Part shown: in pieces, positions 36,901 through 60,579 of the stretch
Position numbering within the stretch: the stretch's first letter is position 1
Layout of the letters: every line of letters starts with the position of its first letter
NCBI GenBank assembly: GCA_964036045.1
Contig: OZ038378.1
Span: forward strand, 188,232,001-188,296,000
Source: Eutreptiella sp. 'Long Island Sound 2002'
Lineage: Eukaryota; Protista; Euglenida
Direction: 5' to 3'
Length of the DNA stretch: 64,000 nucleotides
Program-made: the position numbers and the translations under genes
The notes under the pieces: generated by a model
Seen by the model: the letters and a program-made list of their open reading frames with translations, nothing else
What the model was told of the DNA's origin: nothing
Database searches by the model: none

Positions 36901-39900
36901 ATGATGAAGAAATCGTCGACCTCTGACCCCCGTCACCCGTGGGACATCCTTGACCCAGCGATGGCCCCGTTTCAGACCGTCGCATCGTTGGTCTCAGCAC
37001 ATCCGCTTTTGGGGCACCGCAATGCATTGCATGGCCTCGGGGCAGGGGGGCGCGCGGGAGGGGGGCTGGGGCCCACGGGAGGGCGGCGAGAGGGATGGAG
37101 GACCGCGTGTTGAAGCCGCGGCCACGCTGGTTCACGCTGGACAGACACGTCTGTGGGACGTTATTGCAGGATGCAGTTTGACTGGGGGGACGGCCGTCGT
37201 CGTTCCGATGGTTCAACCCCCGCTTGGGAAGCACCCCGAGGACTGCTGGTGCTCACAAGCACGATGGCCCCGTGGTGCCGCCGCATCTTGGCCGCTGCTT
37301 GCTCACGGCGGGGGGGGGGGAGGGGATGGGCTACATATGCATCATCCAGACAAGTTTGTGCAAAACCTGATGCCATTGGTCCTTGTGGTTTGCCACAAAT
37401 CATCTTTTGAAAGCACAAACTTCAGCGTTTCCCCCAAAGTAGCCCAAGTTGACAGGGTATGGCAAGGTATGGTGTTGAACAGGCTTCCACAATGTCCATG
37501 AAAGAAAGCGTGTGTATCGCATATGATGACGGGGAAGCTGCAGTTTCCACACATTTGTGGGCCATTGTCCGCATCCCCCCCCCCCCCCTGGATGTTGAAC
37601 CAGAACCTGAACCTGATCCCCCACCGGGCTAACGTGTCGTGCCAGACCCCAACCCCCCTGCGGGGGGGGGGGGGGGGGGCTTGGTAGTCCCCTCCTTCCC
37701 GCCGTCAGGATCCCCCCCCACCCACACCGATGGTGACCACTGAGGAACAACCGACTGGGGCCCCAGCGGCTCCCGGAACCACTTTTGGCTTTGGGGCCCT
37801 TTAGTTGAGGCTCGACTTCGTCTGCTCCGCATGTTGGGCCAACGAAATGTGGGGACCGTGTGGGAAGGGGTGGGGGTTGGGCTGAACCCCCCGCATGAGC
37901 GGTGGTGCGCGTCCTCCAGACGCCGATGCCGGACGCCCAGGGGCAGAAGCAGCACTTGTGAGCACAGGGACAGCCGGTCCCACTCTCACCCATCGACAAT
38001 ATCTTCCCCCTCTCGTCCGTGCACAAGCCATGCGGACAACGCCCTTCTTAAAAGCCCAAACCCGTGCGTACACCCGGACATACCAACTGGCACAAGTACT
38101 CAGCCTTCATGGCACACCCCCACCACCCCACCCTCTGCTATGCCCCCGCTTTCCTCAGGCATCCCCTGTCAAGCAGCCCGTCAAACAGGCACATACCAGG
38201 GCCACGCCGCCGTTGGTTCGTGAGCCCCCCGCACCGCCTGCCAAGGCCTCGCCACAGGTCGTCCTTGTGCCCCGCTGCCGTGGACGTTCGCGCGCCCCGG
38301 CGTCATTTCTGGGATGCGCCGATGTTACGTTCTGTCTCGCCGCGAGTGTCCCGTGCAAATCCTAAAGATTTGCGAAAATAATTAATTCCTGGCACAAAGT
38401 ATTGTCATCCGCAAAAAAAAAACCCCAAAAAAATTAATTATTGGCTTCATGCCATACGCAAAAATGGGTTCCGCAAAAAAAATCGCAAAAATAAAATAAT
38501 TTTTGCCCCTGCCCCCCTTTTTGCAAGAATACCAGGATTGTGGGAGAGTTTGCCCCACTGCTTGTTGTCCCCCTCTTCCGTGTCTCATGCCCCATTCTGC
38601 ACCTTGCTTTTTTTCAGAGAATGATGCACCCGGGATTGTCACAAGTGTTCAAACAGTGGAATGTGGCTGTTGATGTGCCCCAAAGCAGATAAAGGGGCTA
38701 GTTCGGGATATTGTTGCCAGTCTTTTTGTGATTAGAATTTGTTTGTTGGTTGTTGGTACAAAGGAGTAAACCCGCGGGCCGAGGCTCTCTCCTGGGGGGA
38801 CTGGTAGACCTGAACCATGCTTGTTGGTGCCTTCTGTGCTATGGACTGCAATCCCAGAGTCCAACTGATCGACATTTGTATGCCTGTGTACTGCAATCCC
38901 AGAGTCCAAGGTATGCACGGTTTCTTGCAGTAGCACCAAAATGAATCAACCCCAATACCCAAAACGCAAAAAAAAACCGGAAAAAAAACTAATTTTTGGT
39001 CCAACACCCTGCGCAAAAATAGGTTCCGCAAAAAAAATCGCAAAGAAAAATATTTTTTGCCCATTTTTGCCCATTTTGGATGCTGCCGCAGAATTTTTGA
39101 TTATTATTAATTCAAAACACCCAACCCAAAATTAGGATTCCGCGAAACCTTAGGATTTGCACGGTAGGGCCGGAGCAATCCCTGTCCCCGCGGCCGTCCC
39201 TGTGCGATGTGGCCCCAGCACAGACCCAGTCCTCGATCCATGTCTTCAGGAGGCGACTGGTGTGAGGGTCAGCGCGCACGTGCTGGACGCCGGCTACATT
39301 CCAATGCAGGTATGGGCACTGAGGACATCAAAGGAATTTTTGTTGAAAAGCAGGGCCGCCCGGAAGGGTCCAGATCCCCCCCCCCCCCTCCTACCCCCCT
39401 CTCTTGGGGGCAGGGATCATGAACATTTTGTTTGCAATTTTTTGTCGTTTTACTTTTGCTTCTGTGCATTTTGTGTCGTGTTTGTTGTTTTGTTTTTTTC
39501 TTGCTTGTTTTGTTCGCTCCTGTATGTTGTGGTTTCCTGTTTCCATTGTGAGCTGTTCCCTTGCTGTACGTATACGTATCTGTCTTTGTCTACAACAAAC
39601 ACATCCACAAACGATACCATGGCAATGTCTAAGCCAGTGATTTGCGGCATATGCCACAAGGGAGGACACAGGGCTTTCGAGTGCCCTGACCGGAACGCAC
39701 GTGGTCCTGCTGGCCCGAGGAGTATCACGCCGTGTTGGAGTTGTGGCGAGCTGCACCACTCTAACAATTGCCCCGTGAGCGGAACGCCAGCGACGTGGAG
39801 TTTGTTTGCTCTGTGGATCTGAAAAGCATTGGGTCCGCCAATGCGACCGGTATACTGACACAATGGGAAAATACTCTTCGCCCAAGTCTGCCTCAAACGC

Positions 39901-42900: not shown

Positions 42901-45900
42901 GCGGGTTGTGGATAAAGGCCCGGGACAACTCTGGGGTTTCTGTAAATCCTGGGCCTGGCAGCAACTGCAAGCTTTTCTCAGTGCACAGGGATACTCCCCC
43001 CAGAGCAGGGACATGGCAGAGGTACTGCAGAGCCTGCAAACCCAAATTGTGAATTCGGGTTGGCCATTGAATCCGCAGGGCACCATGGTCCTGATGTACC
43101 TAATTGGTAAAGCGAAATCACGAATTCACATTGCTCTGCAGTGGCGTCCGATTGCAGCGGCAGCGAAACCCCTCATCACAAAAGGCAAGCCCAGGATTGC
43201 TGCTAGGGCTTTCACGTGTTTTGTTGAAATGATTGTTGATGAGCTACCAGCGGGGTTTTTAAACCCGCAGCTTACAGGGCATGGGCACATGGGTACAGAA
43301 ATTGTGTCCCTGAGGGGCGGAGTTAATCGGGGAGTTGATTGTAAAGAACAATTTAACGTTATAAAGCCTTCCGCAGTGGTCGGCCACATGAGAGAGGCAG
43401 CCGCGTGGCTAACGAAACGGAAACACTTGAGAGCCTTGTTTAGAGCATCAGTAAGTCCTGCAAGAAATTGGGCAGGGCAGGGCAGGCAACCCATAAAGGA
43501 TTTTGGATAATTTCCATGGAAGAACTCATTGAGCTGGTTAGTTTCAGCCTACTGGAGGACAACATGGTAGTTGCAGGTGGTGAGTTATGGAAGCGAACAC
43601 AGGCGATTCCCATGGGAGGCCCGTTTAGCGCTCAAAGCGCTGACTTACATAGTGTTTGGAGCTGCAAGCAGTTTGTGCACAAGCTTAGTGAGTTGGGCAG
43701 GTTTGAAACTACCCCGAGTGGCGTTGTACAGTGGAGTGGAGCTTGTGGCGTCCTGGCGTTGCAACAGTTTTGCGACAACCTGGTTGTAGCGGCTAAAGGC
43801 CCCAACGCAAGACACTCAATGTCTCTGGTGTGCACAGTCATGCAAGATGTCTCGGGTTTGAAGGTAGAGTGTGAATGCCGTGATAAGGATGAAACCGTTG
43901 TATGCGTGGGTGTGTGCATGCGTGACAGTTTAACTGCAATGGGAGTCACCATCCTCCGGGGAGCACCGGAAGTATGCGTGCATGCACATCCCAATGCGCT
44001 AAATGGTTCATGGGGTTTGAAGTTGGGCATCCCACTGCAGAGTTTCTGGGCAGTGACGCAGCGCCAGGTTACAAACATGTTTACCGGTGGCCTGTGCAAC
44101 GTGTTGCCTTTTCTGGGTACGTGGTCAGGGCTGCTTTTATCAGCAACTGCATGGATGCAAGTAGGTGTGCCGTCTTCGTACCCCCCACATGTTGTCCGGT
44201 CTTCCATGATATGTGCCCTGGTTCGGGTTTTGGCGCACACTGTTTGGGATGTTGACTTGTCAGTGACATGGGTCAATCACATTATCAGGCGCCTGCCCCA
44301 GGAGCTCCATTTCACCCTCTCCGATTCGATCTGGTGGCTCCGGGACAATGCTGTCTGGCATGCCCAGCAGTATGCATCATGGCATGTGCCACACGTCGGG
44401 GCTTGCAATACATGGTGTGGTGACTGGCACGGTGACGGCCCGGCACTATGGTCACACAGTCAACGTATCATGTTGCAGGGAGGGGGCATGTGTTTGGTGG
44501 GTTGGAACACCCACCGGCGATGGGGAGGCAGCCATCAAGGGTAATATAGGCCGGGCCGGATGTGCTATACATGGTAACAGGACATTGGTTCGTGATTTTC
44601 TGACCTTGTTCGGTAGTGTGCTGTAGTATGGTATAGTAGCTTGAAGCCTTGATTGCGCGGGAGATGACGAACTGTGATAGTGTCTGGTGTTGTGTGGGCA
44701 GGACCCTATCTCTGGTTGTTGTCCTGCAGCGAAAGGCGCCTATGGCAATGTCACTGATGAGCATTTCATAACCGTGGGCTGAACTGTTGCCTGTGCTTGT
44801 TGGGGACTTGGGCCTGCAGAGCAGTAGTTCGTCACTTGGTTCGACAGAGTTCCCTTGCTGTGAAAGTTAGCCTTTTTCTTGTTGACCTTTCGTGTATGTT
44901 TTCGCCTACTCTGTTCTTATTCGTTTGCCGTCTTGTTTTGCTGTATCTTCTTTTGTTGTTTGTGTTTGCTTTTTTTTGTCCACGCTGCTTTGTCTCTTGC
45001 GGTGTCGTCTTTCTTTGTCTGTTTGTAGTTGAATTTGTCTTTTGTGCTGTATATTGTTTGTGTTTGTGTGTCTCGTTGAGGGGTAGCCGACGGCGGTTTG
45101 GGGGTGCAGATGGCGTTTTTTTGGGGGGGGGGGGGGTAACCTTGAGCATTCTATTTTGGCCATGTGACGGAGGCTTTTTTGCCTCTTTTTTTTTCCCCTC
45201 ACGGATGGCCCTCCTGAAAGGTCAGTTTCTGAGGGGAGGCACACCCACCGGTTGGTGTTGTGTTGGGTGCCCCCCACAGCAGCAGCATTCTACTGCAGGC
45301 CACTGGTCTGGTCTCTTGGGTCATAAATGTGTTTCCACTTCTCTTTATCGCATTCATCATTGCCAAATAGCACAATGTCCACCATTTTTGTGGCCACATA
45401 CTAAGACATACCAAAACGCAAATGCATGCGTGTTTTTGTTTGTTTTTGTTTTATTCGTCTTTTGGACATACAAATGGAACCCCATGCCCCCATAACTCAC
45501 CGTGCTTTGTGCTCCCAGAGGTAAGTCAGATGGTTCTAGCGCACTCACTCTCTCTGCGACTCAGGCAGGGCACTCCTTTATGACCCCGTCTTGCCTGCTT
45601 TGCTTCACTCACCAGCACCCTTAGGTAGGGCTCACGACCTCCAGCTGCTGTCGGTTACCCCCTAACCGCCGTCGGTCATCCTCCAACCGCCATTGGCCAC
45701 CGCTGTTGGCCACCGCCCAACGGCCGTCCGTGACCGCTCCAATGTGACGGAGGGTATGCTCACCCAGTTCCCGTTTCCGTCGAATTAGGCAGCGTCCTGG
45801 ACGGAGGTGGTCTGCGAGATGAGATGCAACGGGTCACCCAGAGGTCCGGGGTCCGCCCAAAGGGTTCTTGTCTTCACCGTGGCACTGGGACCATGAGTGC

Positions 45901-48900
45901 TACCTGTTGTGGGGTGGGGGGGTTCTGGGCAGGACTGGGACTCTTGTGCGTCTCCAACAGGGCGGACGTGCCCGTTGATATGCCGCTGGCACCAGGCAAT
46001 TGTCCGAGGGCGCACGCCTTGGGACGGGGTTTTTGGACAGCTCTTGCGACCCCTCTGATTAGTCGGATCACTTCATCCGGATGCGCAGCCCCCCCCCCCC
46101 CCCATACATCCACATACACATACATACATCCACACAGTTACTCAGCCTTTATGGCAAACCTCCCCCAACATGCCCAGTCCAGGTGTGGTAGGGGCGCGTC
46201 CGGCCTTCCGTGACATGGCGGGGCCCGCCGGCCATTTCATAAGGTGCCTCATGCCTCATGCAGTCCCTGGCAGGGTATGCTGCGCAGGCCCATGCCCTTG
46301 TCCTCGACTAGGTGCTTGCTCTGGGCAGTCCTCGCGTCCGTGAGTCCCGGGAGGATGGCATGTCTGCCTCCGCTGTGGGGTTCAGGGGCATGGACGGGGG
46401 GTCAGTGAAGCTGTGAGTATGGTGCTGGGGAGGGACACATGATTAAGAACTATCATGCTGTGGACAGGATAGTGGCATCAAGTTGCACAAAACAGGGGAG
46501 ATAAACACGAGCAACAGCTACCCCAAAAATGGGCTGTAGACTTTGTTGTGGGGTGAAAAGCTATGTGGACCTTGTAGACTTTGCTGTTGACTCTGTAGAC
46601 CGGGCTGTAGACTTGTAAACTAGTCCAGGTCTACATTGCCCTGTGCACTCTGTAAACCTGGGCAGTCTGGCAGACCTAAGAGGGGAAGACCCTGCCAGAG
46701 AGAAGAAGGACACAATGCCGGTGCAGGCCCAACCTGAAGCATGAAAGATGATCGATGGGGGGCCCTATCGTATTGGGGTCCCCCAAACAGGGAGGAGACC
46801 AATGGCTACCAGATGTAGATAGGTTGTATCCCAAAAATTTCAATTACTGTATCAAAGTGTATCCCAAGGTCCACATGTGCATATCATGTGTGTATCTCGA
46901 CTCTCAAGAGTGTGTATCAAATGTGTGTCCCACCCTATTCACCTTCTGCGGACATTGCTGATTCCTCCTCTGAGGGATCCGATGACAGCAGCACAGCCAC
47001 AACATCATCTCCATCGGGCACAAATTGGCGGTGACTCTGAGTCCGATGGTGAGTCATCAAGTGGGAGTTCAACATCACCATCAGTGAGCCCCTAGCATCA
47101 GATGCACATTTTTTTGTGATTCACACATGCTACACACCCCGGAAGCTTGGGATACGCGTGTGTGATACACACAATTCATGAAGAGAGAAAAGAGATCTTG
47201 GCCATCCCCCAGGGAACTTGCTATCCTCTGCTGGTGGTGTTGGTGCTTGTGTGTGCATTTGGTGATAAGCCCCCCAGTGCCCGTAGTTTTGGTGAGGAAA
47301 GGTTTGCCAATGTCTAGCCCCTCCCCCCCCCTCCCCGCCTCAGCCTCCCTGAGAGGGTGGGGGTCCGAAACTCAACCCTCAACAGGAAGATGATTTTGTC
47401 TGACAAAATGAGGGGTTGGCACCGGCTTCAAGGTGCAGCGGCACCTCTGGGGGCAGGGTACACCCATCGCCCCATTGCCGACCCGCCCAAATCGTCCTCT
47501 TTTTTGATGGCCTGCTCTGGTTTGCGCAGGCGACGCTCCGGACAACTCCACCAACAAAGTGTCTCTCACCCGCTCCACTGACGGACCAAGACTCCTCCAT
47601 CGCTGCCCCGTCTCCGGTACGCCCGCCCCCTTCTGTCAAGCACAGAGCCCTGCCACAAGGACTGGGATTGAAGAAGAGGGAGCGGAGAGGGGGTCTCGAG
47701 CGCGCGAAAGCGGTCGCCGGCGTTCGAAAAGCCATGCTGCACCATCAGGCCCGAGCCTGCCCCCAGTCACTCTGATGTGGACCCGGACCGGCAATCGGAC
47801 CCCCACGGGTTGCGGCCCAGAAGGGAAGGGGCAGCCCTCGTCGCGGGCCACTGCTGTGCCGTGCTTCTCCCCCACTCCTCCTCGAGGCTGCTCTGCCACA
47901 GTGAGCAGCCTGGCTCTGCAACTCAGTCCATTGCAGGACATGTTTGCACTAAAAACAAAAATACCTCTGACTGTCCAGTCGCCAGCCCAGTATTTAGGCA
48001 CACCATTGATCGGCACTGCAAGCCGCATGTGAAGTCACGTGAATGCCGAACTGACGGCGCTGGGAGTGGTCTGGGATTTGAATCCGGACAACGCATACCC
48101 CCCTCTCCCTCATCCTGAAAAAAGGAGGGGGGTCAGGGACAGGGGGCTCAAAGCCCGCCAACAGAGCAGAGCAACAGCACGGCCTCCCCTTTTTTCTGTT
48201 AGAATACGTCGACCTCCAACCGTCGTTGGTTGCCCTTCAAGTGCCGTCCAATTGTGTGCCTAAGTACTGGGCTGGCGACTGGACGGTCAGAGCTAGTTTT
48301 GTTTCAGTGCAAACATGTCCTGCAATGGACTGACAGTGTTATGGCTCTGTAAAGCAGGGTGCGCCTGCTGGAGGCTCCGTCCACACCGTCCTTCTGCCGG
48401 CGCGGACGCACCTCCATCGGATCTGAACGCATTCGCACTCCTGCAGGTCGTGCCGGGGGATGGGTATTCAAAAATGCCCCCCAAAACCCGAAAAAATGAC
48501 CCCCCCCCGCGTCCCCCCTCCTGAAACCCCTGCCCACGCCGCCGGGGTTGGGGTCCAGCACTGAACTGAACCCCCCGCCCCCTTTACTTTTTTTTTGGGA
48601 CCGGGCGCTGACCGGATTCGATTCACTCCGAGGCAATCGACTAGCAAACTGTTCCGGTGCGGGTGGGGGGGGGGGGTAAGGGGCGCAACCCCAAACACCC
48701 GCACGCCACACGAATGTTCCAGAAGAACAGATGGTACTGAGGGACACCAGAAGTCGGTTTGCCGCACCCCCTGCAGCCGCTGCTGGCTGTTGTGCGCATG
48801 GACGTTTCTCGTCGGGTGTACTGGCTCTCGTCTGCACTCCACATTATGCCCCGTGACCTCCGCCGCTGGTACCGCCTGCCGTTGGATTGCGGACCATCAC

Positions 48901-51900
48901 CTGCTGCTTTGAGGGGAGGGGGTGGCTTCACTGGGAGCCTCTTTTGGGTATTGTGTCCGGGAAAGGGGCAAGGGGCTCCATCGACAACCCGAACATCGTT
49001 GAGCGGAAGGTTTCTTGCCCCGATGACGAACCGTTTTCCTTTGGTTGCGGGGAGGTTTGGGGGGGGGGTGACGGGACGTGTGGTGCGCGCACGACCAAAG
49101 TGTCTCAAGCATGAGTCACTGGGGGACGAAGTCGGGGGCAGTGCCGCGAGGCACTCTTTTGCTGAAGTGCGCCCATGTTGTGCATCGCACAAATGGAAAA
49201 CCCCACCCCCGTTTTGAACGAATCGCCCCACTACAACGAACCCCCCCAAATACACCGAACCTTGGGACCTGAGACAGCGTGCACATGAATACACCGGACC
49301 ATTTCGCAGGACACTGTCTCTCTTCACTGCGGATTGCTGTTTGGACGGAAGAATAAAGCAATGGAAAGTTGCCTCTTTTGGGGCTGTACGATAGGCTCAA
49401 GAGTGGGAGGTGGCTTTGCAGCAGCCAAAAACTGTTGCCTGAAGCGTCCGGATCACATCATCCTTTTTGGCATACTTGTAATCACTAGGCATGGTAACCA
49501 GCTTCATCATCCCGGTGTGTGTAGTGTGAACATAGCCAAACTGCACAAACTTTTCAAACATAGTGGGCTCCAAAGCCTGCATGGTGAGCTCGTGTGCCTC
49601 TGCTACAAGCAAAGAAACAACAAAACGTTTTCATCAACAAAATCATGCAAAATAGCATTGATTCTTTGAGCCATATTCTGTTCCAACGAGAACACACAGG
49701 GGGGCACTGCAACGCACGGTGTTTACTGCAGTTCACTATGGTACCCAAATATAACAAACCCCACCACTATAACGAACTCCCCCACAAAAAACGGCAACAC
49801 AAAACTTATACCGAACGGTCCAGTGTATATGAGGGTGGGGTTTAGGGCTGGAAGAGGGATGCAGTCAGAGGGAGTCCCGGGAGCCCAATAGATGCCATCA
49901 GCTAGACAGCGCTTTCCCATCCAGCCGTCGTTCACCTAACATCTGGCCTGGAGGGAATCGGTTCGAACCCGCGATAGCAGGAACGCACGGCTGTCCTGGG
50001 CACTGGGGTGTCAGTGACTCCCCGCGAGCCGAAAGGGCCGCTGCGAGGGATGACGGGTATCTTTGTGCTGGCGTCTGGAGCTCACTCCAACCCCCATTTC
50101 CGACAGATTCTCGCTCCGGAAGGCCCTCTGGTCAAAGTTCTGGGGCAGCTCAGCTACGCGCCCCCCAGCCCATCCAGCGAACAGCCGATGGCGGCGGGTC
50201 CAGGGCACGCCCGGCGCGTGAAGAAGCTGCGGGACATGGAGGTCGCTGTGAGGTATGCGTCCTTTGGCTTGCAATGCGCTTGTGGCGGTGGTGATGTTGC
50301 GAACCCTTTGCACCGTCTATCCCCCGCCCCTTCGTCGCCCTCCCCGCCACAGACCCCTGGACCCGTGTCACAATACCCGTGTCACGTGCTGCAGGGCACC
50401 GGAGCACCCTCCAAACTTCACTTGTGAGCAGCAGCGCCAGCGTTCCGCTCTCGGCGACAAAACCGCACCCCGCCTCCCCCCTTTTATGGTGCAACCCCCG
50501 TCCCCTCCAGCGCCCCCTGCCCAAGGATGTATCAGAACGGCGGACAACCACAGGGACCCCCCCCCCCCCCTCCCCTGACCAAAGTGACCGCAGTGGCAAA
50601 AACGAAATCACTTTGGAGAGAAGTTTGCCATTGGGAAAATCTTGTCCAGCCATTTTGGGTACACAAACTTTTGGGTCCAGACCCCCCCCTTCTCTCTTCT
50701 AACACGCCCCCTGCAATGGGGCTCAGTGCAGCAGCCCTGGGTTGCCCCTGTGTATCGACAACAGAGTATGTGCACTGTACGGGGGGTGTCGGGGGAGTAA
50801 CTCCACCGGTTCACCTGTCCATCGCGGAGACCACAGTGCGGTCATCTGGCCTCATGGACCCAGAGAGGCCATCTGAGCTCTCATTCGGCCCAGCGGCCCC
50901 GTAGCGGAGCAATACGGCATAAGGGCCCCGACCCATACCCATACCGATGCCCCTACACCCGTACCACATCGCGTCCGTTCATTGGCTTGTGGATCCCTCA
51001 AGAGTCACTCGTTTTCCTTCTCTTCTCCTCTTTGTCACTTCTTTCCCTGTCCAACCGGTTGGGCAGGGAACTGCGTTGAAAGCGGGTCTGGGGGCCCGGC
51101 GCGCGGGCGCGGGGACCAGGCACACAGCATACATCCCTCGCCACCCGTAGTCCTACCAACAACAGCTGCTGAACCTCCAGCAGCGTACCACAGCGCCAGG
51201 CCATTTCTGGTTGCAAGCTCCATTGAATAGGTTTCTGATTCGTCGTTTGCTGTTCGAAGGAATGCGCAGCCTGTGCTTAGTGAAAATTTTGGGCGATGAC
51301 CGCCGGCAGTTGAATTGTCGGCGATTCAACGCCGGTCCAGGGCTGTCCCGAAAGGCTGCCCTTGACAAGAAAAAACGAATAGAAAGAAAGAAAAATCCCA
51401 TTGATTAAAGCCGGCCCTGTCTTTAGTGCTGTCCCTGCAGTTTACAAAGTTGACACGTCTTCTCTTTAGCAGTGACAAACCGCAGATGGATGTATTGCTG
51501 AATGAATTTGAGACTCTGCTGTGCGTACTGCCCAGGTGGCCGTCTGTGTGTCGGTGTGTCGCTTTTTCATGGGCCGTGTGTAAATCACGCGATGGTTTTT
51601 TTTTTGTGTGCTAAACTGCAGCTCTGATGAAACTTTTCAACGATATGTCGGAGAATTCAATTTTTTTCACCAAGTTGGTCTTAAAAGTCATGGCATCCGC
51701 AGGCGATTTCTTTCGATGCTGAAAGGCGACGACTGAAATTTGCGACATCAAAAGAGTGCAGTGCACCCCATCCGCTATTTTAACAATGCCTTCAGCAAGA
51801 AAGTGTTGCTGTTTGGGCGGAGTTCGGGAAGACATCGTTTTTGCCAAGGCCAAAGTCATGAAGAGGGCCACTTCAGCTCGACACTTTGCGTGTTTCAGAG

Positions 51901-54900
51901 AGTCAAGGTCTCCTTCTTCTGTTCAATTCCGCCTGCCAAATGCCGCCGGATCAGCAATCACCCGACGGCTGTTAGCGGTTGATTGACGCCTTCGGTGAGT
52001 AACCGCCTGAATGTGGCGACCGACTGACACCTCTTAAAGGTGTTGTGTCACAGAGCACATGGAGAACGCACGGAACCAGACACCCCCACAACCCGGCCTC
52101 CGCACCTGTCACGACGTGGTGGCGTCTCCATCATCCGTGGGGGCGATTAGGCCCATTCAGGCCCACTTTTGTCCCACTGCCTCGTCACATCCCTCGTGAT
52201 GGAACGCCTCCCACATGCGTAGGGCTGAGATGACCAGTCTCAAGTCAGTCAAGGACTCCATAGACACCCGGCTGCCAATCAAGATCGTGCCCCCGCCCAC
52301 GCTCCTGGGCGTGCTCAGGCAAAAGGCGGCAAAGGATGGAAGGTGATTTTGTGCTCGTTGCCTTCGTTCTGCAGAGACAGAGCCTTCGAAGGCCTGTGCG
52401 TTTTCCCCAGCTTTGTCTCCTACTTGGCGCTGGGGCTGGGGCTGGAGGCGGAGGTGGCGTGACGGTCAAGCTGCCGTTAACCCCCCTCCAACCGCCGTCG
52501 GTTGCGCTTCAACCGCCGTCGGCTACCCTCCAACCGCCGTCGCGTACCCACTAACCGTCGAGGTGGGTTTGATGGACGCCAGCAGTTTTTTTTGAAGGGG
52601 GGGGGGGGGGGCTCTAAGGGACCGCCCTGGCAAGGGGCAGGCGGTGAGCGCCGAGGCATGTGATCCGCCCTTGTCGGATGTTTGTGCTGCAGGGAATCCA
52701 CTGCCTGGGTCGAGCCACAGCCCAAGCGCACTGCGCCGCAGCAGCAGCACATGGTATGTGCTCCCGAGGGCCTGTGCACTCTACGACAGAGTCCGGCCCC
52801 ACCGACAGGGCCTCGACGGGAGGAGGCGCAGGAGAGACATCACGGGTTCTCGCCCCCTTCTCCGGTGCAAGTGGATAGCTCACCGGTGGTGCGTGTGCGG
52901 GTCGGTGGGTGACTTGGCTCAGGGGCCATCCCACCCCCTCCCCCGCCGCACTGCCCCTGTGGCTCTGGCAGCACAACCGCAGCTGTCGTGGCCGCAAGGT
53001 CTGCTCCGGGGGTGAGCGCCGGTGCCCCTGAGATCGGGAGGTGGCGTGCCTGGGCCCAGGTCCCCTCCGGTGGGCTCAGCGTAAGGCTCCCTCAGCCCCC
53101 CCCCCCCCCAACCGGGCGTTAAGCACGAGGCCAACGCACAACCCCCTGAGAGACAACGGAGCACCCGGTGTACGTGAACGTGTAGGTCCCTGCCCCCCAC
53201 CCCCTCCGCGTACACCCACGGGCACAGCAGCGGTGAAGAGGAGCAGGCCCCGCCGGGACCTGCACAGGCGGTCCTCCCGTCGGACACTGGCGCCCCAACG
53301 CAATACAAACGGGCTCACACAGGCCGCGGGGCCTGGCAGGGCCGTCAGCAGCCCCGCAGGCCCTGTGACCGGACCGCCGGGATCGCCACGCCCGGTCGAG
53401 TCGCGCGGGAGCGGGAGCGCTGAACCAACCCAAACCCAAACCTCCGGACCTCCTGAAGGTCTCGCACACGGGGGGTGGGTCCACATTCAAACGGGGTGCC
53501 CCCCTTGTGTCACCTGCGGTGCAATACGCCGGTGTAGATGTGGGACATTCAGCCCCCCCCATCCCCCGCCTTCCCCAGAAATGCCCGCAAACGCTGCGCC
53601 CTGGACACTGAAACAGGCCAAGTGCCCAGACCAAGTACCGGCGCACGTACTTGAGCCTTTAGGGTACAGGGGGAGGGAAAATTTCGCCCGGGGACAATTT
53701 CGCTGGGGATAATTTCGCCACCCTTGAAATCCCCAAAGCTCTAAGTGCCATACGCCCAAATGGCGGCGATAACCCAACAAGACACGCCCCAGACGGAGAC
53801 TCCCAAATTGCAACACATCACCACAACAAACAGGCCCCAGCCCCTCCAGCACCAATACTACCGGATCAGCAGCACCAGGTTCCATACATCTGCGCAAGAA
53901 ACGGTTGGCTCAGGCGCGTTGGTAAGCGCTTGGCTCTTCTTAGGAAACACAATCCCTCTGCCGCGGTGGCAAAGGATGGAACTGTTCCGCCAAAAATTTC
54001 GCCAGGGGAAAATTTCGCCACCGTTCTTAACGGCCAAATTTTCCCTGCGAAATTCTCCCCTGGCACAATTTTCCCTCCCCCTGTATCACGCAATGCCCCG
54101 AGCAGCAGCCTCCGGATATGATTTGGTGCGCAAGGCGTCGGGATGCAGAGCCTCTTGCCTCAGTCTTCGCCTACCGCCTCGTCTCCTTCAGGCGCCCTCC
54201 GTCATGACGCGCGTGAAACGGTCCCCGGAGGACATGCGGTATGCCCCCGCGCCTCGGCTGCCGGGCCCTATTCCGGGGTTCTCCATCCGATGGGGACAGT
54301 GCCTGCCGTTTCGGGTCGTTCGCAGGGCCACGCTTCGGGCCGTCCCCCACCTCCGCAGGGAAGAGGCACGGCATCGGAAGCGGAGGGGGCCCAAAGGGGG
54401 GGGATTGTCAGGGGCGGTGGGGAGGGCGATCGGAAGGGGTTGGCAAAGGGTTCGGAGCGGTGACTGTCAGCCACACATGCCGTTGGTGGGGCGGTGGGGA
54501 AAGGGCGGCAGCGGGTCGGTCACAGGCTGGATCCACGGAAAGGGGGCCCCTCCCCTCTTCCCAATGAATCCCCCGAGGAGAGCCGGGGTTGGGGGCGGGG
54601 AGAGGGTACTTGTGGAGACCCTTTCTGTTGTGGGCTGGAGGGTCGGGCAGGCAATTGGTGTCTGGCTCCGTGTGTGCTCCATGTGCCATTTGTGTGCTCC
54701 GTGGTCTCGGACTTAAAGAGCTGTCAGTTGACCGCCATCCGTCGGTGAGCCGCCGCACGCCGTCAGTCAGCCTCCGTTCGTTGAGCAGGCAAGTGGTGAC
54801 GGAGACGGGGGGTTGGGGTGGGGATTACCCCACAAGCGCCATACCCCCGGGTGGCGTGGCTGAATGAGAGCCTCGGTTCGTATTTGGCACGAGAAAAGAG

Positions 54901-56441
54901 TCGCAACGGCGAGGGCGCAGGCAGAGGCTCAGCCGCAACACAAGGGCGATGGGCACGACGCTCGGCGCAATGCGCAAGTTTGCGCGTCGGGGCTCTTCCT
55001 AATCGATCGTCTCCCCCCCCCCCCCCCTATTAAGGGGCGCCCTCACAGAGCGCCCCTCATGAACCATGTCCAATAGTTGTCGTCAGAACGACCTGTCACA
55101 GCGCAGTCTCATCTCCGATGCAGTGCTTGCCGCAGTGGTCCACGACAACGACTCCCGCCGTGTGTCTGTGAGCCCCCCCCCCCCTCTGTGTGTGCCGGTC
55201 AGACCCTGGAGCGCGCAGGCGGCGTTCAGCACTTTGACAACCCCGTCACACGGCGGTGAGGACATCATGAGGGATCGGGTGGGTTCCGAGCAGGGCTGCT
55301 GCACTGCCCTGGGCTCCCGGTGCATGCGCCTCTGCCCAGACCCAAGAGCTCTATTGATGTTATTTTATGGGGGTCTCATGTCTGAGCTCTCCGTGACATT
55401 CTGACCGGATACACGCGAATGGGGGCAGTGCAACAGAATCATCACTTTTCGTGGGAGAACAAGGACCTCGACAATGCAGTGGTGCTGAAGCTGCGGGCCA
55501 TTTTGTGGGCACGGTGCTGGGCACGATGGCAGCACCGCCTCCACGCGCTGCGGCCAAATGGCTTGGCTGGGGCCACCCCAAACGCCGTGGCACAACAATG
55601 GCGTGCACTTTGCAACAGAGCCCGGGACCTGCAGCACCCACCCACAACGCCTCACAAGACCGCCCTTGCCCTCGACGGCCACACGCAGCCCCCACAGGGC
55701 GCCCCCGTCCTCCGTGTCTTGACTCAGAGAACCCGCTTGAATTGGCGGCCCGGACGGAAAACGTCCCCCTCCACGACACGTACCACCAAATGGCCAGTGC
55801 GTCGTGGGGTTTATTTTGACTCGTGTATCCCTATCCCCCAGCCCCCCATCGCCCCCAAGGCTGTCCCACTCTCATCTTCCAAAAAACACCTCCCGTCTGT
55901 GGACAAGCCACGTAGACAGTCTCCTGTCAAACCCGTGCGTACACCCAAAAGTACCGACCGGCACACGTACTCAGCCTTTATGGCACACCGTACCCCCCCC
56001 CCCCCCGCTCCCCGACGGGCCCTTTAGGTCGGCAAGGCCTTCGTCACGGTTCGAGTCGGGGATCCGGAAAATAGGATCGACCCCCCCCCCCCCCCTCCCT
56101 CCCCACGCCCCGTTTCCGCTGACTCACGGCCACTACCACTCCATATGATCCCCCAAAACACCGTCACGTTGCCGTTGTGGTGTCGCAGGCAAATGGCCGC
56201 GTCGTACATGAGTCAGACCGTCCCCAGGCCGCACGACCGCCTCCCGCCCATCAACGCCTCCGGCTCCGTGACCTCCCCCGGCCCCACGAAGGCGGAGGGG
56301 CGCCTGCGCAGCGCCCAGAAGCACTCCACGGGCCTGTTCGGCCCCGCCGCCGGCCGCGTCACGTTCCCGGACGTCCCCCCCGGCCCCACCGCGCGGGTCC
56401 ACATGGTCGTGGCCCCGCAGCTGCGCCCCATGGCGCCCTAA
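6917..56441 (+). CDS. Multi-exon protein-coding gene of unknown function (envelope): array of phase-1 symmetric short exons followed by a unique C-terminal exon series; 5' start not identified
   Basis: More than 20 AG/GT-bounded segments are open in a consistent phase and join in frame to the stop at 56439-56441. Related exons differ mostly at synonymous positions. Confidence 0.75.
8005..8067 (+). CDS. Exon, 63 nt, phase 1-1: (G)PSELPSLSALLHAIGAPCSK(G)
   Basis: cttccacAG / GTGTGC; homologous to exon 11514. Confidence 0.8.
8790..8843 (+). CDS. Exon, 54 nt, phase 1-1: (D)AIPSKSYPSLLLLKDSA(G)
   Basis: Pyrimidine-rich cgcacAG / GTGCCT; homologous to exon 12504. Confidence 0.75.
10152..11007. 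mobile_element. Non-autonomous hAT-type element (856 bp)
   Basis: TIRs CAGGGGTGGATATA / TATATCCACCCCTG; perfect 8-bp TSD CTCTGCAC (10144-10151 and 11008-11015). Confidence 0.88.
11514..11585 (+). CDS. Exon, 72 nt, phase 1-1: (G)ALNATGFPSLSSLLEAIGAPWPH(G); the frame stays open to a second phase-1 donor (GTGAGC at 11718)
   Basis: tgtttcAG / GTGTGC; homologous to exon 8005. Confidence 0.8.
12219..12350. repeat. Minisatellite (ACAACCCTCC)n, about 13 units
   Basis: Read directly from the sequence. Confidence 0.95.
12504..12554 (+). CDS. Exon, 51 nt, phase 1-1: (D)VSSVSLPGLRMLKDVL(G)
   Basis: gcggcAG / GTATCA; the S.P.L..LKD..G pattern is shared with exon 8790. Confidence 0.75.
13696..13758 (+). 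CDS. Exon, 63 nt, phase 1-1: (G)PVGFPCLSAVMRSSGDAQLQ(G)
   Basis: cattgcAG / GTGTGC; GFP.LS motif shared with exons 11514 and 34399. Confidence 0.75.
14892..14957 (+). CDS. Exon, 66 nt, phase 1-1: (G)SAEEARIAASGAGLATLQAAG(G)
   Basis: ttccctcAG / GTGTGA; GLATLQAA resembles GLATLRAA of exon 28180. Confidence 0.75.
15525..15626 (+). CDS. Exon, 102 nt, phase 1-1: (G)PHLSALALLYPPHLSALALLYPPDGLELLQAAA(G)
   Basis: cattgcAG / GTCGAG; contains a perfect internal 33-nt (11-codon) tandem duplication. Confidence 0.85.
16381..16742. repeat. Tandem repeat, unit about 85 bp, about 4.3 copies (GAAGCGGTGGGGATCCCC...GGGGTTATGTAGCCAC...)
   Basis: Contiguous near-identical units; related GGGGACCCC..GCAGGGGT.ATGTAGCC motifs occur near 18.1 kb and 60.6-61.2 kb. 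Confidence 0.92.
16744..17208 (+). pseudogene. Coding remnant with Cys/His motif (PSTNLPVCFKVLDCRKWHCTYAMPHHMAQAHP) and Pro/Ser-rich tail, probably transposon-derived
   Basis: Protein-like composition with C..C..H...H spacing; no family assignment possible without a search. Confidence 0.35.
18185..18306. repeat. 48-bp tandem repeat (about 2.5 copies), each full unit containing GGGGTTAGGG
   Basis: Unit AATCCACGCTTTGTTGCGTGGCCCCTTGAGTTGGGGTTAGGGACTCTC; a related motif occurs near 61.9 kb. Confidence 0.9.
18419..19318 (+). repeat. Segmental duplication copy 1 (about 900 bp; copy 2 at about 21723-22630), carrying the 96-nt exon
   Basis: Near-identical text in both copies; the ORF track gives identical small ORFs for both. 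Confidence 0.95.
18750..18845 (+). CDS. Exon, 96 nt, phase 1-1: (G)ANLPALALLYPPVADGPQKTMNGLEILLAAA(G)
   Basis: tgtttcAG / GTGTGC; mostly synonymous differences from exons 15525 and 23487 over the shared motif. Confidence 0.85.
21723..22630 (+). repeat. Segmental duplication copy 2
   Basis: Matches 18419-19318. Confidence 0.95.
22063..22158 (+). CDS. Exon, 96 nt, phase 1-1; duplicate of 18750-18845
   Basis: Same sequence and splice sites as the first copy. Confidence 0.85.
22889..23287. mobile_element. Non-autonomous hAT-type element (399 bp), TIR-related to 10152-11007
   Basis: TIRs CAGGGATAGATATA / TATATCCATCCCTA; perfect 8-bp TSD GTAGGTGT (22881-22888 and 23288-23295). Confidence 0.85.
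23487..23558 (+). CDS. Exon, 72 nt, phase 1-1: (D)PHLSALELLYPPHRALECLLAAA(G)
   Basis: cacacAG / GTATGC; clear family member. Confidence 0.85.
24295..24870. repeat. Two diverged direct copies of a ~150-bp segment (about 24300-24450 and 24740-24870), followed by (GAGTG)n/(GGGGT)n microsatellites
   Basis: Shared ...AAAGATTGTGA..CCAAGTTAT.CAGCCCAC...GGCAAAGGGCCGC...TTGGGACGGGGC text. Confidence 0.8.
25775..25834 (+). CDS. Exon, 60 nt, phase 1-1: (G)PGFASLALLCPGYSPAKEE(G)
   Basis: gtccccAG / GTATGG; SLALLCP resembles ALALLYP. Confidence 0.75.
26195..26257 (+). CDS. Exon, 63 nt, phase 1-1: (G)SSTTPHAPCIDGLARLRAAT(G)
   Basis: gttttcAG / GTGTGA; paralog of exon 28180. Confidence 0.8.
26936..27004 (+). 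CDS. Exon, 69 nt, phase 1-1: (G)PGLSYLSKVFAAKDAVQPVASK(G)
   Basis: gttttctAG / GTATTT; GL..LS.VF motif shared with exon 32669. Confidence 0.7.
28180..28242 (+). CDS. Exon, 63 nt, phase 1-1: (G)TGSMAHAAYIDGLATLRAAT(G)
   Basis: gatttcAG / GTGTGA; paralog of exon 26195 with the frame preserved. Confidence 0.8.
30150..30203 (+). CDS. Exon, 54 nt, phase 1-1: (D)ATSSDAFEGLLALRDLG(G)
   Basis: cgtggcAG / GTACGC; resembles exons 8790 and 12504. Confidence 0.75.
31860..32107 (+). pseudogene. C-terminal coding remnant ending in a PIP-box-like motif (KKQMELTSFFK*), probably from a DNA transposon
   Basis: Q-x-x-L-x-x-F-F immediately before the stop; followed by repeated GGGGTACTAAATTT motifs (32205-32275). 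Confidence 0.45.
32669..32734 (+). CDS. Exon, 66 nt, phase 1-1: (G)LSGLRSLSAVFKASQYAALER(G)
   Basis: tgttgcAG / GTATGC; resembles exons 26936 and 13696. Confidence 0.75.
34399..34458 (+). CDS. Exon, 60 nt, phase 1-1: (D)ARIPGFPALSVLSHTARMQ(G)
   Basis: tttcctcAG / GTACTG; PGFPALS motif. Confidence 0.75.
35412..35471 (+). CDS. Candidate exon, 60 nt, phase 1-1: (D)QQSSCLRALFTAGSRPRVQ(G)
   Basis: ccgtctcAG / GTATGC; only weak motif similarity. Confidence 0.5.
38351..39164. mobile_element. TIR-bounded non-autonomous element (about 814 bp) with A-rich subterminal repeats
   Basis: CCGTGCAAATCCTAAAG at the left end and CCTTAGGATTTGCACGG at the right end; 38400-38510 resembles 38960-39065; no TSD found. 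Confidence 0.7.
39619..40990 (+). pseudogene. Gag-like ORF with five CCHC zinc knuckles and a coiled-coil-like segment (one frameshift, in-frame stops)
   Basis: CGICHKGGHRAFEC, CWSCGELHHSNNC, CLLCGSEKHWVRQC, CMRCGNDDHCTAKC, CLWCGVRGHVYRKC; the frame continues through TGA 40226 and TAA 40667. Confidence 0.85.
40993..41820 (+). pseudogene. N-terminal domain of the PLE polyprotein, function uncertain (weak DNA-methyltransferase-like pattern)
   Basis: 275-aa open frame directly upstream of GIY-YIG; segment NVWLHSP..FS...PVWEHI...HFLAIFP. Confidence 0.5.
41895..42572 (+). pseudogene. GIY-YIG endonuclease of the PLE
   Basis: LIYAM-x7-LYIGKT...RLRKH...FVEHEW motifs (IY at 41928-41933, YIG at 41964-41972). 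Confidence 0.85.
42573..44544 (+). pseudogene. CxC linker and Penelope-type reverse transcriptase (stops and frameshifts)
   Basis: CQC at 42579-42587 with DGHF; VVDKG; LMYLIGKAK..QWRPIA; DCKEQF; AIPMGGPFSA; catalytic position reads FCDN (43768-43779). Confidence 0.85.
44729..44762 (+). ncRNA. Candidate minimal hammerhead ribozyme, type II topology
   Basis: GC-GAAA-GGCGCC-UA-UGGCAAUGUCA-CUGAUGA-GC: full catalytic core, palindromic stem III (AGGCGCCU), stem I hairpin, 2-bp proximal stem II. Confidence 0.6.
47530..47616 (+). CDS. Candidate exon, 87 nt, phase 1-1: (G)DAPDNSTNKVSLTRSTDGPRLLHRCPVS(G)
   Basis: tttgcgcAG / GTACGC; C-rich third codon positions. Confidence 0.6.
47887..47920 (+). CDS. 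Candidate exon, 34 nt, upstream of the nonconventional intron: (G)CSATVSSLAL(Q)
   Basis: Strong pyrimidine tract ending ctcgAG; SSLAL resembles the family SLALL motif; joins in frame to 48338. Confidence 0.55.
47921..48337 (+). other. Candidate euglenid-type nonconventional (non GT-AG) intron, 417 nt, long stem-loop
   Basis: Starts ACT-CAG and ends CTG-ACAGT; ~95-nt inverted arms (47924-48018 / 48241-48332); removal gives CTG CA|G TTA TGG in frame. Confidence 0.65.
48338..48446 (+). CDS. Exon, 109 nt, phase 2-0: (Q)LWLCKAGCACWRLRPHRPSAGADAPPSDLNAFALLQ
   Basis: Donor CAG|GTCGTG; its phase-0 end matches exon 50107. Confidence 0.6.
50107..50252 (+). CDS. Exon, 146 nt, phase 0-2: ILAPEGPLVKVLGQLSYAPPSPSSEQPMAAGPGHARRVKKLRDMEVAV
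   Basis: ttccgacAG / GTATGC; high GC at third positions. Confidence 0.75.
51211..51986 (+). pseudogene. Possible degenerate hAT-transposase remnant
   Basis: AT-richer island; FTKLTRLLFSSDKPQMDVLLNEF and KRATSA segments loosely recall hAT central and dimerization motifs; no TIR found. Confidence 0.25.
52238..52342 (+). CDS. Exon, 105 nt, phase 2-2: (S)LKSVKDSIDTRLPIKIVPPPTLLGVLRQKAAKDG(R)
   Basis: gaccAG / GTGATT; high GC3; phase fits the neighbouring exons. Confidence 0.7.
53579..53621 (+). CDS. Candidate exon, 43 nt, phase 2-0: (R)NARKRCALDTETGQ
   Basis: ccttccccAG / GTGCCC; supplies the phase change needed between exons 52238 and 54192. Confidence 0.55.
53667..54083. mobile_element. Tc1/mariner-type MITE (417 bp), TA-flanked
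   Basis: TA|CAGGGGGAGGGAAAATT ... AATTTTCCCTCCCCCTG|TA; internal AAATTTCGCC subterminal repeats. Confidence 0.85.
54192..54238 (+). CDS. Exon, 47 nt, phase 0-2: APSVMTRVKRSPEDM(R)
   Basis: ctccttcAG / GTATGC; high GC3; phase 2 matches the terminal exon. Confidence 0.7.
56189..56441 (+). CDS. Terminal coding exon: (R)QMAASYMSQTVPRPHDRLPPINASGSVTSPGPTKAEGRLRSAQKHSTGLFGPAAGRVTFPDVPPGPTARVHMVVAPQLRPMAP*
   Basis: tgtcgcAG acceptor; very strong C/G third-position bias; TAA stop. Confidence 0.85.
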
Positions 56442-58985
56442 GGGCCCTCGCCCCCTCTGCAACCGGATGCCGCCGTCCCTTTGTGCGCCGCGCGCGCCAC
56501 CGTCTTCCGCACGATCAAAGTCCCGGGGGCCAGTCACGGAGGGTTGACCCCCCCCCCACCCCCATCCCCGCGCAGCCGTTGGAGGTACGCAGTCGCACCC
56601 AACGAGACGCACGTGACGGACGTGACACGGAGGCACCGGTCGTCAAGTGCCCCGTCGGGTGCCAGTCCCACTCACAGATCTGCGGGCGCAAGGCGCCGCA
56701 GGGGCACGCCCCAGAGGCAGCCTTCTCTTTCGTCGTCGCGCATATCTCTGCGAGTGCCTGCCCAGTGGTCACCGTGGCCTCCACGTGACACCCCCACACG
56801 TCGCCATCCGCGCGGCTCTTGGGTGCCCATTTCCCTATTCCCTTTGCAAACGTGTGGAATGACACGCTCTTCAGCAGCAAAACGGTACGGCCTGCGCATT
56901 TGCATCGGCGCGCCGCTCCTCCGGGGCATAGCGCAGGCGCCTCGGCTCTAACCCGCTGACCGTCCCTTCGCAATCAGATCCGTGACCTCAGTGGGACCGC
57001 TGCCGTCGGGGCATCGGCCTTTCTGTTGCCGGTAGAAATCGGGAGGAGCAACAGCGTCCCGCTTCAACGGCGGTGCTCCTGCGCATCGCCGTTTGGGGGC
57101 CAGGGACCGTGACCCCTCCCGCCCTCCAACCGCCCTCCAACCGCCTGCGTAGTCGCAATGTGACTGACCAACGGCGCTCTATTTATTGCTCTTTCGTGTT
57201 GTTCCTTGACTCCCACCCTCGAGCCCAGGCTTTCGCTTGAGGGGGGGGGGGGGGCAGGTGGGTACCCCCCCCCCCGCCCCCTTTCGGGGTGACAGTCGGT
57301 GCTGCTGACTGCTTCAGTCCACCTCCAACGACCCCCCAACCGGCTCTCAGACCCCGGGCACGGCGCTCTGCACTCCATGCGTCCGTCCCTTCCTCCGTGG
57401 GTCGTGCCGCCCAACGTGATCAAGGCGGACGTTTCTGTTGGCCATGGCATCGGAATGTGCCTCGCGGATACCGCACCAGTTGACCCCCCGTCAGTCATTA
57501 TGACGTCATCTTCGTCAGGCCTGACGTGCTACATCAATGCCTCTCCTCCGCGTTCTCTGGGGTCTGTATGTTGGCCCCCCGTGGCTGCACGGTCGGATCT
57601 AACCGACGCCCACCTCTCTCCATCCGTGAGTCGCTCTCCCTCACCCGCGCAGCCAAAGCCCGCGGGACCGCAAGGGACGCCTCCTCCGTGTGGTCCTCGC
57701 GGCGCAGCAGGATACCGCCTCGTCCACGGGCCCCCGGCTCCTGTCTGTACCCAAGTCGCCCGCACCGCCCACCTGCCCGTCCTCCCTTCCTGACCCGCAT
57801 GATGTTCACTTGCCTCGAACAGCCTTGCCCTCCGACACCCCCCTCCCCCGCCACCTCCCCCTCGTGTGGAGGCACTGGTGGGGGGAAGCTCCGGGAGTAT
57901 CGGGTCACCCCTGGGGGTCCGCATCGCCTGTGACTCAGTCGGTGTCCCCCAGACCCCACAACGTCTCATGCCGCGTATTGACCGGACCTGCGTTCCGATG
58001 TCCCAGAATTTCAGTCGTTTTCGTTGGCTCTGTCCCGCATTTGAAGGCCGGCCCTGTGCACTAGTCTCCGTCTGCACTGCACGCAAAGTGTGCCCTGTTC
58101 AGCTGCCACAGCCTGACTGGAGTCTCCTGCTCTTGGTGCCCTATTTTGCTACTTTGTTGCATTTTGTGATTTCTACTGCGCGCATGCGCGCGTGCGTGTG
58201 TGGTTACACTTGGAACAGTTTTCTCGCCAAAGTGGAAAAGGTTTGCTGTCGGATCCTTGATACTGTGCATGCCACAACCCGCCCCGCCGCACGGAGAGAC
58301 GGAAACGGTGGAGGCAAACTGACGGCTTGCGGTTCATCTGTGAGTGGGTGCGTATACTGATGCACTGGCTGAGTTGTGTTTAGCCGGTGTTTTCAGGCCG
58401 GCATGTCCCTGATACGACTGTCACGCCTTGTCCCTTCTAACCCCCACCGCAGCCACGGCCCCTCCCCTGCACAGGAGCATGCTTGCGTTTGAATACATGC
58501 ACCCGAAAGTGGGATCGCAAGAAAGCAGGGGACTGCAGCACTGCTCTGTTCTGTGCCGTGGGCCCTGACACTTGCGTGACCCATGCGGGGGCCCCTCCTC
58601 CATCTGGTGGATCGGCCTTCCGCTCATAGTCACCCGCCTTCCGCATCGCACCAGCGGCCGGGACCTTACGAGGCTGGTGCCCTCCTGGATAAAGCCTTAC
58701 AGCGCCGCTTCGCAGGCTTTTCAGGCACGCCACCACCAAGGCCTTTTGGGCAACATCTGCTCCACTTCATTGACTGCCCACGGGCAGGCCTGCGCTTGAA
58801 GGTCCAGGACGCTGGTGCACCTGAACCATTTACGGGAGGGACACCAGCATGGGCCAGTGGTGTCAGTACTCGTACGGGATCGCTTTTCCCAGTCCGGCGG
58901 CGTGCCTTGCTCATGCTGATAGCATGACCAGCCAACAGTAGGCAGCCCGCGATTGCCCCCCCCCCCCCCTTTCCCTTGATTTGTA

Positions 58986-59564: not shown

Positions 59565-60579
59565 TACAGTGTCCAAAATCGCATTTTTGAGGGCAAGTAC
59601 TTGACCTGCGATGTTCTTAAGGCACAGAATTTGCCCCATGCCAAACCCTCTGGCAAGGTGGCAGCCAAACCTGCAACAAGTGCACCCATTCTGGTGGCCC
59701 CTGTTGAGCAAGGGCAAATATAATCGCCAGAAAAAGTGGCACAGTGGAACCTGCTCCGCAATAGACCTGAGCAAACACGGTGACATGCTCTTTCACGGCC
59801 ATTGTATGCATGCTATGCCCTTGTTAGGTGCATTTCCTGTGGCATGCCACAAGTTCTTTGCAATTCCCCTGGGGCCAAGGGACCATCACCTTTGGCCATT
59901 TTGGCCATGTTCCTATGGTTCCCATGAGGGAGCCGTCGCGCACTAGCGCACATCGCACGGGGAAGGGGGTACTATGATACCCCTCCCCCCGGCCCCCACA
60001 CACATGGAGTGCCAGCCTGCCTGACCGTCATGATAACCCCCTCCTTGACACCAGGTCCCTCCGGCATGTGGATCCTCCGGCGTGTCAGACACCGGGGGCC
60101 GGGGGGCATTTCCAAGCAGCAAATCATAAAAAGGCAACTGCAAACTTTTACCGAATTTTCTGACCACGGCTTTTACGGTCAGAAAGTAGGCAACACGTGA
60201 TTGTGTGCCGATTGTAGAGGGAGAGAGGGGCTGTTTCATGCTTGTGATGAGTTCTCCTGCTCATAACAACATTCTGCTTGGTACTGCACCCCGGGGGAGC
60301 GTTAGCGCGCCGGGCGCGCGCCAGGCATCTTTTTTGACCCGTGCCCCACCGGTGACCTTTTGGGGTGTGCGCGCAGTGCGCGCGCAATGCAACTATTTGG
60401 ACGTCTAGCCGTCCTAGAACCCCATACTTTGTGATACTATGGGCATTATTGTTGTTTGCCAATGGGTATTTTGATGCTTCTTTCCCATTCGGGATATGGT
60501 ATATTTGGATTCTCACCCATGTTCACCCATTTTCATCCATTTTTTGCTCGTTTCCACCACATCCACTCCTTACTAGGTT

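Follow-up and report, generated by a model that had tools for sequence, protein, structure and literature searches.

A hairpin MITE beside a probable exon in Eutreptiella, more likely a passenger of a GT-AG intron than a nonconventional intron

In the 64,000-nt stretch of Eutreptiella DNA analyzed here (the window), a hairpin element of 423 nt (47919-48341, no strand assigned) was identified next to a probable exon of a repeat-exon gene. The sequence itself is a hairpin MITE, a non-autonomous element with terminal inverted repeats and bounded by a putative 8-bp target duplication, for which the role of a passenger is more likely than that of a new intron. That the element lies as a passenger in a GT-AG intron is considered probable. 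The original prediction had assigned 417 nt of it to a nonconventional stem-loop intron splitting an exon of an "array gene." That euglenid nonconventional introns originate from MITEs is an already published hypothesis, dating back to 2014 (PMC3935182; also PMC4770533, PMC11282704). The probabilities of the readings, given below in words, are judgements and were not computed.

Structure of the Hairpin

The candidate nonconventional intron (47921-48337, + strand, splicing predicted only) has a length of 417 nt and carries CAG at positions +4 to +6 and CTG at -8 to -6, as originally described. Its first base is A, its last is T and the next is G, which confirms the purine, pyrimidine and purine claimed for these positions. 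The borders (ACT CAG ... CTG ACAGT | G) agree with N3CDG...CHG-N5|R and thereby with the code of Euglena nonconventional introns, 5'-N3CDG-/-CH'GN5-6|R-3' (PMC12501133). The inverted arms (47923-48017 on the + strand, 95 nt, and 48240-48333 on the - strand, 94 nt) are 90.5% complementary over 95 nt (E 1e-31) and are extended outward by 4 nt (47919-47922) and 8 nt (48334-48341), respectively. The arms of about 95 nt were recovered, but not their start exactly at CAG, as the perfect stem already starts with the pair T47923:A48333, one base further out than CAG/CTG (probability 0.83). The following pair C47924:G48332 has a probability of 0.998, and pairing within CAG/CTG joins the segment ends. 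The additional pairing of the terminal ACT and AGT, which had been part of the original prediction, did not hold up, with probabilities of 0.09-0.24 and no such pairs in the minimum-energy and centroid structures.

The fold of 47921-48337 has an energy of -237.5 kcal/mol, compared to -133.5 on average for shuffled sequences (z -19). Read on the + strand, the eight arm mismatches comprise two G:U, two A:C and four others; a G:U bias is absent, so the arms give no hint of selection for an RNA stem on the + strand. Searches of the element against Rfam and for tRNAs (ARAGORN) gave no match, and the reading frame that is open across the left arm had no hit in Pfam. An interior stretch (48068-48090, - strand) resembles a tRNA T-arm or polymerase III B box by eye, for which ARAGORN and Rfam are likewise without match. 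The element contains a subterminal CCAACCGCCGTCGG-type repeat (48210-48248, + strand), which is very abundant in the genome, and an inverted copy of it continues the left arm inward in degenerate form (48036-48066, - strand; local alignment score 23, weak).

Element Ends and Target Duplication

According to the original prediction, no residual target site duplication is visible. This was found to be incorrect, as a perfect 8-bp direct repeat TGGCTCTG is located at 47911-47918 and 48342-48349 (both + strand) on either side of the 423-nt element, and the repeat can be extended to 9-11 bp with one mismatch. Between the two copies, the element begins with CAAC-TCAG and ends, reverse-complemented, with TAAC-ACTG-TCAG. 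The inverted repeat extends outward past CAG/CTG up to the direct repeat, interrupted by a single 4-nt gap and mismatched at one terminal position. In a loose test, random pairs of equally sized flanks drawn from the window share an 8-mer with a probability of 0.0034, and a joint test which also includes the terminal complementarity gives 0.0005; both tests were designed after the repeat was noticed and are post hoc. From these ends, the direct repeat appears to be the target duplication of an inserted element.

The element together with one scar comprises 431 nt, 14 more than the 417-nt cut and in a different frame. The insertion scar lies outside the proposed cut, which therefore fails to give back the empty site; 14 extra nt would be left by the 417-nt cut if the scar is real, a frameshift relative to that site. 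Under the 8-bp scar, the empty site read in the frame of the stem-loop intron has a stop directly after the left piece, whereas reading from the AGs at 47905 and 47908 leaves it open. A nonconventional cut of 431 nt was rejected, since no CHG stands at N5-6 at any slid position (read from the sequence).

Further duplications were considered for this element. A hAT-like 3+5 duplication at CAG/CTG was rejected because 47916-47923 and 48333-48340 are identical at only one of eight sites. Seven changes in eight sites have a probability of 2e-7 at the divergence of the arms and 8e-5 at 20% divergence. As CAG/CTG lack an adjoining 8-bp duplication, the self-erasing 3+5 geometry of hAT elements does not apply. 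A 2-bp CA duplication and a degenerate duplication of about 29 nt (p 0.03) were rejected as well.

Family, Age and Alleles

Reads were compared over 47001-53000 in four runs (X1, X3, X4 and X5), all of which behaved as DNA. In run X1, contigs corresponding to 47182-48143 and 48234-49470 cross the two junctions without difference, and the same holds for X3, a run from a second sample, with contigs at 47182-48110 and 48234-48694. These data suggest that there is neither a common empty allele nor a sister copy with an exact 31-mer of the arms, although this is not proof as contigs drop rare variants. Assembly L001 was made from the same DNA; it shows no difference from the window and does not count as independent support. 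On 48264-48270, 92-100 other contigs per DNA run match with at least 80% likeness, mostly with letters unlike this copy, and some contigs connect the inner end of the left arm to the abundant CCAACCGCCGTCGG repeat. For the inner arm only, these contigs indicate a dispersed multicopy family. A contig in a run labelled as another organism follows 48213-48324 with 21 differences, and a distant relative is present in the window itself at 29404-29513. Searches with arm patterns in metagenome, viral and genome contigs matched no sister copy, and the translated arms gave no match.

The picture from these copies is that of an older, diverged family rather than a young burst. The young age originally proposed is unsupported, with no exact sister copy, only about 100 diverged contigs and no empty allele in the contigs. 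In contrast, the proposed MITE-like origin is supported by the arms, the non-coding 423 nt, the 8-bp repeat and the diverged family. Exact pieces of the window with a length of 151-184 nt were found in an estuary metagenome, which is compatible with a Eutreptiella host. The euglenid host, to which the original prediction saw the element pointing, does not rest on the element itself.

Host Gene and Predicted Exons

The + strand carries small predicted exons with AG/GT borders. The upstream exons at 15525, 18750, 22063, 23487, 25775, 26936 and 34399 run from phase 1 to phase 1 and repeat a motif like PxLSALALLY; they probably constitute the array gene of the original prediction. This array of symmetric phase-1 exons covers 15525-34458 (+ strand) and has no Pfam match. 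Within it, 18419-19326 and 21722-22639 form a duplication with 98% identity, which includes one exon. The last four predicted exons (50107, 52693, 54192 and 56189, stop at 56441) form one continuous frame with high GC3. Among the other predicted exons, AG/GT borders are present in 16 of 16, a count that is biased as the search finds AG/GT borders only.

The closest predicted GT-AG exons around the element are 47530-47616 upstream, for which both the phase-0 and the phase-1 frame are open, and 50107-50252 downstream, which begins in phase 0 (both + strand). Two predicted exons, 36397-36446 and 48358-48446, lead from phase 1 to phase 0 and are mutually exclusive, and the exons between them (38159, 39250 and 47530) are open in both frames. 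One of the two may possibly be false, or they are alternatives.

Homologue searches were performed with the exons one at a time. For exons 56190-56438 and 50107-50250, the matches were confined to open frames from this genome (P0001, P0002) and one weak repeat protein, which was judged to be a chance match. Given the length limit of the search, this says little on longer kin. The Pfam search of the exons yielded no family.

Flanks and Splice Sites

On the right side of the element, 48358-48446 (+ strand, phase 1 to 0, predicted) is probably an exon of the repeat-exon gene, judged by its motif and donor; its start may also be 48337. The last ten codons (48417-48446) resemble the repeat motif, with rank 17 of 99,136 at the protein level and rank 14 of 127,940 at the DNA level. 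The donor after 48446 is GTCGTG, with GTCGAG at 15626 as a precedent. Motif match and donor precedent favor a real exon ending at 48446. The donor itself is weak, with 13.5% of GTs scoring as high, and codon periodicity is poor in the frame of the stem-loop intron. Donor 48463 was rejected for that frame because of its wrong phase. An apparent extension of the motif into exon 50107 was not counted (rank 2-6%, unspliced control 1 vs. 7).

On the left side, evidence for the candidate 5' exon piece of the stem-loop intron (47887-47920, + strand) is mixed. It would start at 47887 after GAG or at 47902 after CAG. Codons 47895-47918 rank 7 of 2,245 acceptors on 8 residues and 18 of 2,136 on 10 residues in likeness to the repeat motif, which is not seen in the DNA (rank 6,921 of 127,952). 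Of the claimed split exon, the right part stands as a probable exon in the claimed frame, and the left part is a candidate with mixed evidence.

Splice-site matrices were built from 16-17 predicted sites. The acceptor scores are 3.1 for 47902, 1.5 for 48358, -0.9 for 47887 and -6.6 for 48337, compared to a leave-one-out median of 2.4 over 17 acceptors. AG 48356-48357 is within the top 6% of AGs. The acceptor at 47901 is the best local one, lies upstream of the element and is in frame only with a cut divisible by three; the chance of an in-frame acceptor as good within 40 nt is about 2% (113 sites in 64 kb). The acceptor at 47886 is a GAG, and the other acceptors are YAG in 17 of 17. Inside the right arm, a strong AG is located at 48306-48307 but out of frame, and acceptor 48307 was rejected as it gives a stop.

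As originally claimed, removal of the 417 nt is in frame: the frame is open from acceptors 47886 or 47901 and connects a phase-1 upstream exon, via a start at 47887 or 47902, from phase 1 to phase 0. A plain GT-AG intron ending at 48336, 48354 or 48357, with the exon continuing at 48337, 48355 or 48358, results in the same frame. A GT-AG cut from 47926 is also in frame, with options of 411, 429 and 432 nt, all multiples of three. Since several cuts are all in frame, the open frame does not discriminate between them. A nonconventional intron is formally possible, with borders that follow the Euglena rule, but it is not required.

Comparison to Known Elements

With euglenid nonconventional introns (PMC3935182; PMC12501133) the segment shares CAG at +4 to +6, CTG at -8 to -6, the purine after the cut, paired ends and the open frame. 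The differences are a stem of 95 bp here, whereas Euglena nonconventional introns need only 12 bp, and neighboring introns which are all predicted as GT-AG, whereas 72% are nonconventional in E. agilis (PMC3935182; PMC12501133). Moreover, the insertion scar here lies outside the cut, GT-AG alternatives exist in frame, and excision is predicted only. No published nonconventional intron for Eutreptiales was found in the literature searched, and their tubulin genes are without introns (PMC3935182).

[quoted passage not shown] Long arms of about 100 bp, subterminal repeats and the 8-bp scar fit such elements. The features shared with MULE and foldback MITEs (PMC5225508) are the arms of about 100 bp, subterminal tandem repeats, the 8-bp duplication, the non-coding sequence and a diverged multicopy family. 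The fit to TIRs of >100 bp is borderline, as the arms have 99-103 bp plus a decayed inner 30 bp, with a TSD of 8 bp. In addition, one arm tip shows a 4-nt indel, and no transposase or autonomous partner is linked to the ends. By these features the element may be a Mutator-like MITE, with putative ends set by the duplication.

A CAG...CTG element at 10152-11007 with the perfect 8-bp duplication CTCTGCAC served as a hAT-type control. CAG/CTG near the ends and an 8-bp duplication are shared with hAT MITEs, but in the hairpin element the duplication does not abut CAG/CTG, and its arms greatly exceed those of the control (14 bp) in length. With introners of the Micromonas type (PMC11282704) it has in common that a TIR element is able to supply a splice site, here AG 48335-48336 in frame. 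It differs from them in that no family of near-identical exonic copies is seen and the supplied sites score poorly.

Other Repeats in the Window

The window contains additional repeat elements. An element with short inverted ends CAC...GTG at 16033-17544 is flanked by the perfect 8-bp duplication CTTCCAAG and harbors an 85-bp minisatellite at 16371-16743. A diverged relative of the right half of the hairpin element (29365-29520) lacks 30 nt through a deletion and has a short inverted end, with no duplication visible. At 53665-54085, a 421-nt element with 55-bp inverted arms beginning TACAGGGGG is present, with no clear duplication. Repeats of the CCAACCGCCGTCGG type are located at 45635-45728, 48210-48248, 52484-52557 and 57119-57145 and are extremely abundant in the DNA runs; in the hairpin element the repeat occurs within the ends of an inverted-repeat element. 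Finally, about 400 nt are duplicated in tandem at 60578-61504 (88% identity), and a 53-bp repeat is present there.

Possible Explanations

In the preferred explanation, a Mutator- or foldback-like MITE (423 nt, long arms, cut-and-paste, non-autonomous) would have landed at the 5' end of a small exon in the repeat-exon gene, or immediately upstream of it, and created the 8-bp target duplication. It would have aged since, which would account for arms about 9% apart and the 4-nt indel in one tip. An ordinary GT-AG intron from 47617 to AG 48356-48357, or alternatively to AG 48335-48336 supplied by the right arm, would remove the element passively and join 48358-48446 in frame to exon 50107. This insertion near the exon, with splicing to 48357 or 48336, is the foremost single reading, at slightly less than an even chance. 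The superfamily, the exon status of 48358-48446 and the splice path are what we infer within it. The 8-bp repeat at the extended arm ends, the motif match and donor precedent of the right flank, the adequate in-frame acceptor of 48358, the AG/GT borders of the other predicted exons and the absent G:U bias in the arms argue for it. The best local acceptor, 47901, sits upstream of the element, however, and the empty site would carry several AGs 18-40 nt upstream of 48357. A passenger must accordingly treat both acceptor 47901 (about 2%) and the CAG at the stem start as coincidence. Both coincidences would disappear if 47921-48337 were cut out of an exon 47887/47902-48446 by the euglenid non-GT-AG machinery. 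Such an intron would explain the good upstream acceptor and both motif matches, leaves an open frame from phase 1 to 0 and shows the exact N3CDG...CHG-N5|R match with pairing inside the motif (PMC12501133). The machinery may also be old, as a few such introns have been reported in Rhabdomonas (PMC8219788). Nevertheless, the 8-bp direct repeat must then be chance (p 0.0005-0.003), no duplication is found where a clean birth would leave one (1/8 identical), the motif match of the left piece is missing at the DNA level, a start after 47886 would use GAG against YAG in all 17 other acceptors, and the Eutreptiales literature searched offers no precedent. The stem-loop intron is rated rather unlikely, and so is its fuller version, an intron derived from a long-armed transposon with relatives in the genome that would use internal CAG/CTG instead of its true ends as splice signal. 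The likelihoods of the stem-loop intron and the passenger are judged to be of similar size. The prior favors the passenger because the hairpin was picked from thousands of such elements, because the neighboring introns are GT-AG (the biased count given above) and because of the missing precedent in Eutreptiales.

The element may also lie in a single GT-AG intron of 2,490 nt (47617-50106) without any live exon, its flanks being never exonic or a dead exon; this is rather unlikely. With 47530-47616 read in phase 0 and joined directly to 50107, ten GT-AG exons form a chain without a stop, exon 39250-39309 favors phase 0 (GC3 0.80 vs. 0.47), and 48358-48446 has the poor codon periodicity and weak donor described above. 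On the other hand, 47530-47616 scores higher in the phase-1 frame, and the motif match at 48417-48446 is left to chance (about 0.002-0.01 before correction). In the dead-exon version, a former symmetric array exon of 129 nt (47887-48446 minus the element) would have been killed by the insertion and would now be skipped. If the duplication is taken as 11 bp, the empty site forms an exon from phase 1 to phase 1, as is the case for the rest of the array, and the right duplication copy has a TAA in that frame, but another phase-shifting exon is needed, with only weak candidates such as 48723-48733. Much less probable than all of these is an introner-like, stem-assisted GT-AG intron of 411 nt from the GT of the left arm (47926) to the AG of the right arm (48336). 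It is in frame, as are the 429- and 432-nt options, it would use the good acceptor 47901, and elements donating splice sites are known (PMC11282704). However, its donor GTCCAT is far from the GTATGC-like donors of the gene, its acceptor (48337) has the lowest of the scores listed, and both sites are buried in the stem.

Implications

As the element adjoins a probable exon, it offers a cheap test of independent excision in this host. If the nonconventional intron is true, the splicing code would extend beyond Euglenales, and the element would exemplify the origin from MITEs that has been proposed. If it is not excised alone, the element is no more than a usual transposon copy and a reason for caution, as an internal part of an inverted repeat can then agree with the CAG/CTG rule.
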